From NCBI GenBank assembly GCA_020536535.1, contig JAHLWZ010000116.1, positions 36,639 through 100,638 on the forward strand: a stretch of DNA of 64,000 bases. The letters are read 5' to 3'. Position numbers and translations under genes: made by a program. Origin of the DNA: Pelomyxa schiedti (Eukaryota; Protista; Evosea). Positions 20,650-22,984 of the stretch are shown piece after piece (the stretch's first letter is position 1; every line of letters begins with the position of its first letter). The notes under the pieces are model-generated. The model had not been told where the DNA came from. It saw only the letters and a list, made by a program, of their open reading frames with translations, and did not search any database.

Positions 20650-22984
20650 ATGTCGCAGGGACCGTCACCTCCAACCACGGCAGAGTGGCCTTCATCTGTT
20701 GGAAGAATACACGGCGAAAACTCGTCTGAATGGTTCGAGTATATCTATCCCTTTTTTACTCTCACTCTTCCTCAGTGGTTATTGCCACAAATCAAGTGAT
20801 GGGAGAGTATCATTTGGGGTGACAATATACAGGCTCACAGTTGCGCACTACCAAGAGCTTGCTAATAGGTGGTGGCTTTGCAACAAAGTCTCTTATTACA
20901 TGCTGACCTTTTTTAAAGAAATTGGCGTAGATCTGGGACCTACTTATACAAGCCTGTGAACGAAAAAGCGTGTTGTGGGCACTACACAATCAGACTTGAT
21001 GTGACCCAGTTCAATAGAAACGCGAAGCAACGCCAAGTCCACAGGCGAATCACAAACTTTCTTGCACATGATACACTAAGTCCTGCCCGTCCAAACCCAT
21101 ATCAGTTGCAACCATCTATACTTTCCCCCCCTACAAGCAGTTCAACTTCGACTGCATCGGCGGCAATACCACCAACGCCACCAAAAAAACCGAATAAAGG
21201 GTCCAACAACAGATCTACTGTTCCCCCTGAGATATCTGCAGCTGTTACTTCCGCTTTGCAATCAGTGGTATCCCGCAACATGCCCCTTCCCCACCAAGAA
21301 CACATAAACTCCATGATGCAACAAAAAATAAAACCAAAAGTATGGCAAAATCCCCCCAAAATGCAGCGAACTCGTGGAATCTATTCATGCAACGTTGCTA
21401 TGATTGTGTCAGCAGAATTTCGCAAGATGTTTCCAGCTGCAGTGAGTACACCTCTGCCCACTGAACCAACCTGTACCCCAGTTTTGCCGGAGGCTCCTGG
21501 TCACAAACCACTTACAGAAAAACATGGCCTCGGCATCTGTGTTCCCCTATGCGTGGACTCTTGCAAGTCTGTGATTACACCCCTTATTGAAAAGCAGTCA
21601 CTTGGAGAACTAATATGTGCTGTGTTGGCAGGAATACTTACTAAGTGGAGCGTGAAGTATGACTCGGGGTATGTGAACTTCTTTGATGCCACATCCCAAG
21701 CAAAGCATGAAAGTCCTCTTGGACTCTCTTTCCCACAAACTGAACAAGAGGAAGAGCAAACAGTGAGAAAGCGAAGGCATGAAGAGATGATAGAAGCGGA
21801 GGTAGACATTGCAGCATTGAAAAGAGCTAGCTCCCCTCCAGTGCGAATGCGTGGAGTGGGAAAACGGGTTGTTCCTAGACGGGTTGCATTTGCAGCACCA
21901 GACCAAGAAACAGAGTTAACACGCAATTCCCTGGAGCAACTTCAACTGTCACCAACCACTCCCTTACAGACTCCACCTCCTCAACAGGCCCCTCCCCCTA
22001 TGCATGTTCTACAATTTTCCATGCACCCCAGTGAGTTTATAGCCGAAGAATACGAGTTGTATAAGAAGTATCAGATGTCCATTCACCACGACTCTGAGGA
22101 TGATATTTCCGAGAAGAGTTACACGCACTTCCTGGTTTGTAATTTCCTTTTCTTCAAAGTCTAACATGCACCAGGTCGAAACACCACTTCTTCCTTATCC
22201 AATTCCAGGAGAAGTGAGATACGGAGTCAAGGAATATGGATCATATCGTAAAGCTAGTTGCCCTTGAAATCCTCACTCATTCCCTTGCAGACATGCAATA
22301 CCGATTGGATGGGAAACTAATCGCGGTGGGTGTAATTGACATCTTGCCTGAGTGCTTGTCGTCGGTCTATTTCTTTTATGACCCCCAGTACAAAAAACTC
22401 AGCCTGGGTGTGTACAGTGCTCTGATGGAAATCGACTGGTTACTTGACACCTGCAAAACAATCCCGGGTTTGAAGTACTACTACATGGGATACTGTAAGC
22501 GATCCCTACGCCCAGCAACTCCCTAACTTGCTTCACAGACATACACACATGTCCCAAGATGAAGTACAAAGGTCGCCTTACTCTCTTTTAACGGTTCTAA
22601 CTTCGCGTAGGGCAGTTCGTCCCATCTGAGCTATGGTCAGAGCACACCGGGAGATGGGTGCCATTAAGTTCCTGCGAGCCGCTTCTCAATGCCGCCCGTG
22701 AATCACACCAACCATTCATTAACATCGACCAATCCATCCCCACAACAACTACAACAACCTCCAGTGCCAGTGCAGCAACACAAACACCAACATCGGTCTC
22801 GGCAGCAGCCGGACCGGCTGCGCCCCGTTTGCCTGTGCAAGCCCAAGTTACGCAGCTCAAGGTGTGGGCAGATGGCAGAATAGTGTCATACAAGGACATC
22901 ATACCAAAGTACCAACCCCTGCTACAACAATGGGCCAAATTCGCTGGTCCCACACTTACATCCCAAATCCTATGCATGCTATGA
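20650..22984 (+). CDS. ATE1: Arginyl-tRNA--protein transferase with large central insertion
   Basis: Spliced ECGYC, YQELANR|[22 protein letters not shown]; C-domain [59 protein letters not shown]. Confidence 0.95.

Follow-up and report, generated by a model that had tools for sequence, protein, structure and literature searches.

The 64,000-nucleotide stretch of Pelomyxa schiedti DNA analysed here (the window; positions 36,639 to 100,638 of contig JAHLWZ010000116.1, assembly GCA_020536535.1) carries on its forward strand a gene that encodes arginyl-tRNA--protein transferase (ATE1), the features of which are collected in Table 1. The identity of the gene is given by Pfam fragments of ATE_N and ATE_C at opposite ends of exon 4, by the Cys motifs C-G-Y-C and C-C, which are read in exons 2-4, and by the GNAT core. 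Single exons or whole database proteins served as queries in these searches. Pfam gave no match on the short exons 1-3, and ATE_C scored 83.1 bits on exon 6 alone and 157.7 bits on a transcript-derived protein (P0001) that is 99% identical to exons 4-8.

Table 1. The ATE1 gene of P. schiedti and the parts of its inserted region (positions in the window)
Feature	Position	Strand	Description
ATE1 gene	20376..22984	+	8 exons; stop codon included; predicted protein of 742 aa
ATE1 exons	20376-20467, 20589-20732, 20776-20868, 20919-22134, 22175-22247, 22291-22494, 22539-22571, 22611-22984	+	
ATE1 exon 4	20919..22134	+	in frame from 20920; end of ATE_N, entire inserted region and start of ATE_C
Add1-like (Arg_tRNA_synt_N-like) domain	21226..21693	+	aa 213-368 of the model, internal loop included
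G51-I-Y-S-C-N56 and helix	21376..21429	+	corresponds in ArgRS to the 'GDYQ-like' motif plus the next helix
Pro/Cys-rich loop	21433..21585	+	about 50 aa, inside the domain; lineage-specific length
Helix	21592..21636	+	counterpart of ArgRS 'P-x-x-I-A-x-x-I'; AF2 helix 123-137, pLDDT >90
Terminal beta-hairpin	21646..21687	+	carries G148-Y149-V150-N151-F152 (21667-21681)
Charged low-complexity linker	21694..21996	+	between the Add1-like domain and the resumption of the conserved ATE1 core

Transcripts of the ATE1 gene

Six of the seven ATE1 introns (43, 50, 40, 43, 44 and 39 nt, all GT..AG) were confirmed by spliced RNA contigs, while intron 1 and the start codon, which lie outside the RNA coverage, are predicted. 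The stretch of interest (21226-21684) begins about 60 aa downstream of the end of ATE_N and ends about 110 aa upstream of the start of ATE_C. It is kept unspliced in RNA contigs from which the six neighbouring introns have been removed, and one contig record (X1, record 1) covers 20949-22133 with no gaps and no mismatches. Because the RNA contigs run through it, splicing out of this stretch is excluded, and the Add1-like module described below is translated from the mature mRNA. In one NCBI gene model (P0002), a 97% copy of the stretch is fused to a kinase, as if it were intronic or part of a different gene, but the chimera was traced to an apparent second copy, a partial one, with which the contig begins. 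In the RNA contigs the stretch is in frame and is flanked on either side by spliced ATE1 exons, so that the probability of a gene-model artefact is negligible.

A module inserted between ATE_N and ATE_C

On the forward strand, 21226-21684 translates in frame and without a stop into 153 aa, identical to the peptide quoted in an earlier, sequence-only reading of this DNA. That reading had likened the insert to the tRNA-binding N-terminal 'Add1' domain of arginyl-tRNA synthetase (ArgRS; Pfam PF03485, Arg_tRNA_synt_N), and the Add1 elements that it listed, GYVNF included, map in the claimed order onto the secondary structure of an AF2 model. In insert numbering, this consists of helices 2-18 and 23-33, a strand at 39-41, a helix at 57-68 that follows the motif G51-I-Y-S-C-N56 and, in the distal half, helix 123-137 and then a hairpin (141-146/149-154) carrying G148-Y-V-N151-F. 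The region of the G51-N56 motif and its helix aligns with human ArgRS FGDYQCNSAMGISQMLK, and residues R50, G51, S54, C55, N56, A58 and K67 are invariant when the six closest ATE1s are aligned. Helix 123-137 aligns both with the consensus of ATE1 inserts, 'spkeiaekL', and with human ArgRS NPREIAENITKHL.

The Pro/Cys-rich loop (about insert aa 70-120) is modelled with low confidence (pLDDT 26-63). It is retained in the mRNA and has no counterpart in the closest relatives; loops of variable length occur at the same internal position in many plant ATE1 copies. The charged linker downstream is likewise retained in the mRNA, shows no Pfam match and is without counterpart in close relatives. According to the model, the GNAT core of Pelomyxa ATE1 is interrupted between ATE_N and ATE_C by a module of about 110 residues with a predicted fold.

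Sequence relationship to the ArgRS N-terminal domain

The PF03485 profile has 85 positions and a gathering cut-off of 21.5 bits. No match to it was found by Pfam, even at E<=10, in the Pelomyxa insert, in either half of the insert or in exon 4. Searching all six frames of the entire genome with PF03485 gave none either, and missed even the ArgRS N-domain of the organism itself, which introns split. Eight other ATE1s do carry a match above the cut-off between ATE_N and ATE_C (22.0-32.2 bits, with coverage up to positions 2-85 of 85), namely P0003 (27.1 bits), P0004 (22.0), P0037 of Acrasis (32.2), P0106 (29.9), P0014 of Rubroshorea (26.2), P0066 of Riccia (25.9), P0127 (25.7) and P0044 of Marchantia (23.8), and Brassicaceae ATE1 copies lie under it (12.4 bits). 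HMMs made without any Pelomyxa sequence gave the Pelomyxa insert 29.8 and 30.4 bits, with profile positions 11-119 of 124 aligned; the score of 30.4 bits came from 44 ATE1 inserts, as one domain over insert aa 3-153. The profile match that the sequence-only reading led one to expect is thus absent from the Pelomyxa insert itself and present in orthologous inserts, to which an HMM links it. Since PF03485 misses the Pelomyxa insert, its membership rests on transitive homology together with predicted structure. Judged from these alignments, chance resemblance is an insufficient explanation, given that an HMM of ATE1 inserts from other species matches the Pelomyxa insert along the domain.

In the reciprocal direction, a profile of 45 ATE1 inserts, with no ArgRS included, found human ArgRS as the best match among PDB sequences (E 2.4e-4, 24.6 bits), followed by the ArgRS of P. 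horikoshii (E 0.0096) and, from Klebsiella, an ArgRS N-domain (E 1.6); all of the PDB ArgRS matches fall within the N-domain and are in register. A profile of only six insert sequences reached ArgRS in the PDB at E ~1.5 and, searched against 1.84 billion representatives, found nothing beyond its own clade at E<=1e-3. When the Pelomyxa insert alone was used in a protein-language-model search, the top named matches were three PF03485 clusters. Derivation of the insert by recent copying of ArgRS within this genome was also considered and rejected, as the insert shows no similarity to either ArgRS locus.

Predicted fold of the insert

The AF2 model of the insert based on the 45-sequence alignment has a pLDDT of 80.1 (core >90), whereas a run with six sequences was unusable (pLDDT 39). 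When the model was compared with 48,161 chains by VIA-align, ranks 1-7 were all ArgRS N-domains (Z 10.9, 10.4, 10.2, 9.4, 9.4, 9.1 and 6.0; 75-89 residues aligned), and the best unrelated chain had a Z of 5.9. The six N-domains at Z 10.9-9.1 superpose with an rmsd of ~2.0 A over 80-89 residues. Foldseek against the PDB also placed ArgRS on top (TM 0.61 to 3gdz), but with weak E-values (0.45-5). The insert is therefore modelled with the Add1 fold, although AF2 may have learned the fold of ArgRS, which would make the model partly dependent on it.

A variable or disordered linker that resembles ArgRS by chance would fit the silence of Pfam on the Pelomyxa insert, the poor six-sequence run, which was the first one, and the preprint of Cartwright et al. 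(PMC11370617), in which the mouse, fly, plant and slime mould insertion is designated an IDR, but it is contradicted by the eight PF03485 scores over the cut-off, the reciprocal ArgRS match, the confident 45-sequence model and top structural matches that are all ArgRS, and is very improbable. With the ortholog scores, the reciprocal match, the structure search and the conserved G-(F/Y/H)-x-N-F strand described below all pointing the same way, we hold homology of the ATE1 insert to the ArgRS N-terminal domain to be highly probable at the least, as the sequence-only reading had proposed.

Compared with the Add1 domains of known structure (e.g. PDB 2zue/2zuf, 4q2t, 1iq0, 3gdz and 5b63), the predicted fold of the insert is alike (Z 9-11, rmsd ~2 A), and both have the same order of elements, a GDY-x-N-like motif followed by a helix, a P-x-x-I-A helix and a terminal hairpin with an aromatic-x-Asn motif. 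They differ in their setting: Add1 is N-terminal in a class I synthetase, whereas the Pelomyxa module is inserted into the interior of an aminoacyl-transferase with a GNAT fold. The Pelomyxa copy differs further in its disordered loop of ~50 aa, in having Ile for the Asp of GDY, and in escaping the Pfam model.

The terminal hairpin and A20 of tRNA-Arg

The A20 pocket of ArgRS is a beta3/beta4 hairpin bearing the motif Tyr/Phe-Asn/Gln (PMC3956977, PMC8318970), and the Y149-V-N151-F motif of Pelomyxa ATE1 has the aromatic-x-Asn/Gln pattern of that hairpin. In the alignment of the 45 ATE1 inserts, G148 is invariant and conservation reaches at least 90% at N151 and F152; these three are the only invariant or near-invariant columns, and the G-x-x-N-F strand is the best-conserved part of the insert. 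In plant ATE1s (C-N-G-H-I-N-F), His stands at the aromatic position of the hairpin, and the GDY motif, which reads G-I-Y in Pelomyxa, is 'dLdYTS' in plants.

In the Pelomyxa genome, A20 was present in 4/4 tRNA-Arg types found and in 0/24 other tRNA types, in a sample of 28 types from 30 loci that represents part of the tRNA set; this lends circumstantial support to D-loop binding by the ATE1 domain. The ArgRS of this genome is closest to that of yeast, in which Add1 binds the D-loop and position 20 is not its identity element (PMC8318970). If the ATE1 module still acts as a tRNA-Arg selector, it may be ATE1 that keeps A20 fixed in tRNA-Arg in lineages with an ArgRS of the yeast/mitochondrial type, to which position 20 is immaterial.

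Distribution and origin of the domain

The similar insert in plant ATE1s that the sequence-only reading had mentioned does exist, as all 32 ATE1s surveyed from green plants and the green-alga clade carry the Add1-like domain. Both plant ATE1/ATE2 (Arabidopsis-type, Marchantia, Physcomitrium-type) and the heterolobosean ATE1s of Acrasis kona and Willaertia magna have it at the same ATE_N/ATE_C site, with the same conserved hairpin, and amoebozoan-like ATE1s and those of several other protists also have it at this site. Among the sampled ATE1s, every heterolobosean and every amoebozoan-like one carries the domain. Plant ATE1s are without the N-terminal CUE-like region that the amoebozoan-like clade has. 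Neither the domain nor a remnant of it was found in the animal and fungal (yeast included) ATE1s, which agrees with the earlier placing of the insert outside the yeast/animal ATE1 core.

Yeast ATE1 has the ATE_N / GNAT / ATE_C core in common with that of Pelomyxa, but the insert is missing from it, and its tRNA recognition is mainly of the acceptor arm (PMC10115844, PMC9351520). In mammalian ATE1, what splits the GNAT fold at the same insertion site is an extended tRNA-binding loop that includes helix alpha-Cloop and is also termed an 'IDR' (PMC11370617, PMC11283454). The human loop at that site touches the D-arm, T-arm and variable loop of tRNA-Arg (PMC11283454), and its function and that of the Add1-like domain may be analogous. 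The mammalian loop differs in being disordered in the apo state, and no sequence similarity between it and the Add1-like domain was detected.

On the tree, the presence of the domain in ATE1 involves five changes, and it was lost several times. Its spread over Archaeplastida, Discoba and Amoebozoa suggests that an A20-reading ArgRS of the cytosolic/archaeal type supplied the domain and that it was inserted in an early eukaryote. Fungi would later have lost it, and a disordered tRNA-contacting loop would be its replacement in animals. The full scenario, in which this early acquisition still acts as the tRNA-Arg selector in plants, Heterolobosea and Amoebozoa, while fungi deleted it and animals swapped it for a disordered tRNA-wrapping loop, is put forward tentatively, at somewhat short of even odds.

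A putative tRNA-Arg selector in ATE1

In the literature on plant and amoeba ATE1, this stretch is described as a variable or disordered linker or as an IDR (PMC11370617), or a human-type element is said to be absent; for plant ATE1, only ATE_N and ATE_C are listed (PMC5452128). Literature searches turned up no paper that places Arg_tRNA_synt_N (PF03485) or any ArgRS-like domain in ATE1. Because an ArgRS-homologous domain is located where the literature has a linker, ATE1 may have a tRNA-Arg selector of its own. The Add1-like domain would dock on the outer corner of tRNA-Arg, doing the same job as in the synthetase, and the pocket of the terminal hairpin (G-Y-V-N-F) would read the D-loop, in particular A20. 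Meanwhile, the ATE1 core would hold the acceptor stem and the arginylated 3' end, and the result would be a built-in choice of Arg-tRNA-Arg from the pool of aminoacyl-tRNAs. Speaking against it, yeast ATE1 manages with only the acceptor arm (PMC10115844), so that catalysis does not require the domain. The statement as a whole, Add1 homology together with reading of the tRNA-Arg D-loop and A20 by the insert, is the one that we favour, and it is reasonably probable.

A true Add1 homologue could instead have lost tRNA binding and be a protein-protein module, docking to ArgRS, a substrate or a regulator, or a spacer in the split GNAT fold. We regard this as fairly unlikely: the degenerate GDY motif, the tolerance of large loop insertions, the repeated losses and the functioning of fungal ATE1 without the domain (PMC10115844) are in its favour, but the most conserved columns are those of the G-x-x-N-F hairpin, which is the A20 pocket in ArgRS (PMC3956977), the insertion site adjoins the tRNA in human ATE1 (PMC11283454), and A20 is specific to tRNA-Arg among the sampled tRNAs of the genome. 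Another view is that the domain binds the elbow of any L-shaped tRNA without reading A20, so that the arginyl moiety and the acceptor stem would be the sole sources of specificity, much as yeast ArgRS Add1 sits on the D-loop without position 20 identity (PMC8318970) and as ATE1 specificity is thought to be due partly to shape and acceptor-arm contacts (PMC10115844). However, the hairpin Asn is conserved to at least 90%, as in A20-dependent ArgRSs, and the insert model is closer to the N-domains of A20-reading ArgRSs (Z 9.1-10.9) than to that of yeast (Z 6.0), which makes general elbow binding unlikely.

Reading of the D-loop by an Add1-like domain would bear on how ATE1 selects Arg-tRNA-Arg, a matter for which the yeast structures offer acceptor-arm contacts only and human ATE1 a lineage-specific disordered loop. 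In plants, arginylation controls oxygen and NO sensing via the ERF-VII factors, and a conserved, ArgRS-derived, putative D-loop reader at that site provides a concrete hypothesis for them that can be tested by point mutation. The 'IDR' of animal ATE1 would be recast as a replacement, or a degenerate successor, of a folded domain, and Pelomyxa ATE1 would be an example of a tRNA-identity module of a synthetase that is reused by the enzyme consuming the product of that synthetase.

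The ATE1 gene and its transcript

By sequence, the gene in the window is that of an arginyltransferase, ATE1. Its exons predict a product of 742 amino acids, and its introns measure 39-50 nt, except for intron 1 (121 nt). Pfam recognized ATE_C in the transcript-derived protein P0001 (157.7 bits) and in exon 6 alone (83.1 bits); the insert lies within exon 4, between the last part of ATE_N and the first part of ATE_C. A single study supplied RNA contigs, derived from its single-cell RNA-seq runs, that reach neither intron 1 nor the start codon; in them, six of the seven introns were spliced exactly at the modelled GT..AG borders. 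One contig (record 1 of set X1, 1868 nt) matched 20949-22133 without gap or mismatch and continued into the spliced exons 5-8, a second spanned 21198-22019, and a third, lacking introns 2 and 3, spanned 20676-21215. Because contigs run unspliced through the insert, it belongs to the mature mRNA, Pro-rich part included, and the splicing-out named as a refutation in the sequence-only reading is excluded.

Positions of the features (window coordinates unless a contig is named)
Feature	Position	Strand	Remark
ATE1, eight exons	20376-20467, 20589-20732, 20776-20868, 20919-22134, 22175-22247, 22291-22494, 22539-22571, 22611-22984	+	read from sequence
CUE-like N-terminus	20376-20732		exons 1-2
Insert	21226-21684	+	aa 213-365 of ATE1
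Pro-rich loop with Cys cluster	21472-21570		
Aminotransferase-like gene	~18800-20190	+	upstream of ATE1
Partial ATE1 copy (L011)	G000:C116:1-1151		outside the window; 97% copy of 20759-21915
Second ArgRS-like locus (L003/L004)	G000:C362:~7600-8620	-	
tRNA loci noted for A20, GCG or clusters	L012, L013, L018, L019, L022-L025, L040		

For the window ATE1, the searches below used exon 4 or its parts as query, and Pfam found no match in the short exons 1-3 taken one by one. The N-terminus (EKFPNLAEPILQ and SFLSRFNNNAKDAISAIL) resembles a CUE ubiquitin-binding domain. By Pfam, two related ATE1s, P0003 and P0004, have an N-terminal CUE domain, and one is also listed for P0016; if the likeness is real, this would be a CUE-ATE1 fusion in the clade. 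The spliced gene upstream has ORF pieces resembling, by eye, an aspartate/aromatic aminotransferase, and its end lies about 185 nt from the ATE1 start codon, a compact spacing. The window covers 36639-100638 of contig G000:C116. At the start of this contig, a partial copy of ATE1 extends from intron 2 to the middle of exon 4, including the whole insert; the contig then runs into a kinase gene, and both are joined in the NCBI model P0002, named 'protein serine/threonine kinase [Pelomyxa schiedti]'. This copy may be a fragment of the other allele, a product of misassembly or a genuine partial duplication.

Relationship of the insert to arginyl-tRNA synthetase

The insert had been likened to Add1, the N-terminal domain of arginyl-tRNA synthetase (ArgRS; PF03485, Arg_tRNA_synt_N). 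PF03485 gave no match to the window insert, to either half of it or to exon 4, even at E <= 10, a result that, taken alone, would refute this likeness. A search with exon 4 yielded five related ATE1s from Logan/ENA assemblies (P0003, P0004, P0006, P0012 and P0013), encoded by intronless genes on compact eukaryotic contigs, which align with the window protein across the insert; residues R50, G51, S54, C55, N56, A58, K67, I130, G148 and N151 are invariant in the window and these relatives. Between ATE_N and ATE_C, PF03485 (cut-off 21.5 bits) scored 27.1 bits in P0003 (profile 2-85 of 85), 22.0 bits in P0004 and, below the cut-off, 20.7 bits in P0006. In a wider survey, an ATE1 profile retrieved 226 proteins, ten of which were rescanned with Pfam. 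Six of the ten carried PF03485 above the cut-off at the same position (Acrasis kona, 32.2 bits; P0106, 29.9; Rubroshorea, 26.2; Riccia, 25.9; P0127, 25.7; Marchantia, 23.8), Eruca (12.4) and Hibiscus (13.3) were sub-threshold, and Willaertia and a wasp gave no match.

An HMM of ten ATE1 inserts, none from Pelomyxa, matched the window insert at 29.8 bits, in two parts broken by the Pro-rich loop. A second-round HMM of 44 inserts, again without Pelomyxa, matched it at 30.4 bits as a single domain (profile 11-119 of 124; insert residues 3-153), and this score, together with exon 4 and the RNA contigs, confirms the Add1-like stretch. The insert HMMs detected the domain in 45-47 of the 127 ATE1s surveyed; Willaertia and all land plants of the set were among those detected, which bears out the suggestion of the sequence-only reading that plant ATE1s carry a similar insert.

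The window insert was aligned with the 44 others and with no synthetase (alignment A4), and the resulting profile was run against the sequences of all chains in the PDB. The best matches were three constructs of human cytoplasmic ArgRS (E = 2.4e-4, 24.6 bits), followed by P. horikoshii ArgRS (E = 0.0096) and, lower, the Klebsiella ArgRS N-domain on its own (E = 1.6). These matches all lay within the N-terminal domain and in register, with GDYQCNSAM, NPREIAENI and GPGFINV of ArgRS facing dYTSNiAf, sPkeiAekL and cnGhiNF of the inserts. With a smaller insert profile, all matches at E <= 1e-3 among 1.84 billion representative proteins belonged to the inserts' own clade, which limits the power of sequence alone in a database that large. 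When only the window insert served as query in a protein language-model feature search, three PF03485 clusters were the top named matches (scores 0.79-0.82), a lead only.

AF2 gave a pLDDT of 39 with a six-sequence alignment and 80.1 (pTM 0.68) with A4, the core exceeding 90 and only residues ~71-120 being low. The top Foldseek matches in the PDB were ArgRS (2zue, 3gdz with target TM 0.61, 5b63, 5jld, 4q2t and 4oby), weak by E-value (0.45-5). VIA-align, which does not depend on Foldseek, was run over 48,161 representative chains and placed ArgRS at ranks 1-7, aligned to the N-terminal 80-90 residues: 2zuf (P. horikoshii, Z 10.9), 5jld (P. falciparum, 10.4), 4q2t (human, 10.2), 3gdz (Klebsiella) and 1iq0 (T. 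thermophilus; both 9.4, ranks 4-5), 6ao8 (Neisseria, 9.1) and 1bs2 (yeast, 6.0). The top six (rmsd ~2.0 A) were the only matches with Z >= 8, and the best unrelated chain reached Z 5.9; the insert fold is a predicted model, and AF2 had already seen ArgRS structures. The model is closer to the A20-dependent ArgRS N-domains than to that of yeast. Although Pfam misses the window insert itself, the PF03485 matches of its relatives, the A4 matches to ArgRS and the predicted fold make its homology to Add1 very probable.

The resident ArgRS (G000:C31), closest to the yeast enzyme (83.8 bits versus 68.8 for human, one exon), shows no similarity to the insert, which therefore was not copied recently from this synthetase. 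At a second ArgRS-like locus, F-D-T-C-N-L-R-S stands in place of the F-H-A-G-H-L-R-S (class I HIGH motif) of the resident enzyme; this locus is likely to be a pseudogene or a degenerate paralogue.

We found no literature connecting ATE1 with an Arg_tRNA_synt_N-like domain. In a plant ATE review, the only domains listed are ATE_N and ATE_C, separated by a 'variable inter-domain' region (PMC5452128), and Cartwright et al. describe the insertion as an IDR in fly, plant, mouse, human and slime mould (PMC11370617). Automatic Pfam annotation already flags PF03485 in some ATE1s and the Acrasis protein bears the NCBI name 'arginyl tRS', so the raw database signal exists, yet the domain appears to be undescribed.

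Distribution and history of the domain

In an unrooted tree of 122 ATE1 cores (insert columns excluded, quick maximum-likelihood search), all 45 domain-bearing ATE1s fell in one 78-row clan (SH-aLRT 96), with fungal and animal sequences outside it. The domain occurs in 32 of 32 members of the clade that unites all named green plants with the green alga Monoraphidium, in four of five of a heterolobosean group, and in all five of a CUE-bearing amoebozoan-like clade; in the Ochromonas-containing clade, four basal sequences have it and the other 28 lack it. The label changes five times on the tree versus 36.5 for shuffled labels, and at least three changes are forced by starred branches. Carriers of the domain come from Archaeplastida, Discoba and Amoebozoa; since Amoebozoa are sister to Opisthokonta, an early gain with later losses would be the simplest reading.

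tRNA-Arg and the possible role of the insert

ARAGORN was applied to an incomplete sample of 30 tRNA loci of this genome. All four tRNA-Arg types (anticodons GCG, CCT, TCT and TCG) have A directly after G18-G19, at position 20, and none of the 24 other types does (U, C or G instead); thus A20 is a clean mark of tRNA-Arg in this organism, within this incomplete sample. tRNA-Arg(GCG) genes are present, where eukaryotes usually have tRNA-Arg ACG, and the tRNA genes form dense mixed clusters recurring on several contigs.

Across the 45 inserts of A4, G148 is the sole invariant column, and N151 and F152 are the only others conserved in at least 90%. All three lie in the terminal hairpin G-(F/Y/H)-x-N-F, whose Asn is the residue tied to A20 recognition (PMC8318970). 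In the window protein, the Pro-rich loop falls where many plant ATE1s carry loops of varying length, a position that tolerates insertions; this lineage-specific loop holds a small Cys cluster (C-T-P ...) absent from the relatives.

In ArgRS, Add1 binds the tRNA elbow. The insertion splits the GNAT fold of ATE1 at the site of a long loop in the mouse and human enzymes (PMC11370617), part of which becomes ordered in the cryo-EM structure of human ATE1 with tRNA and substrate, contacting the D-arm, T-arm and variable loop (PMC11283454). By analogy with this loop, the Add1-like domain would be placed to reach the elbow. Reading of the tRNA-Arg D-loop and A20 is the most likely candidate function of the insert, an assignment that we favour by a little over even, and its role in ATE1 is a mechanism open to direct test.
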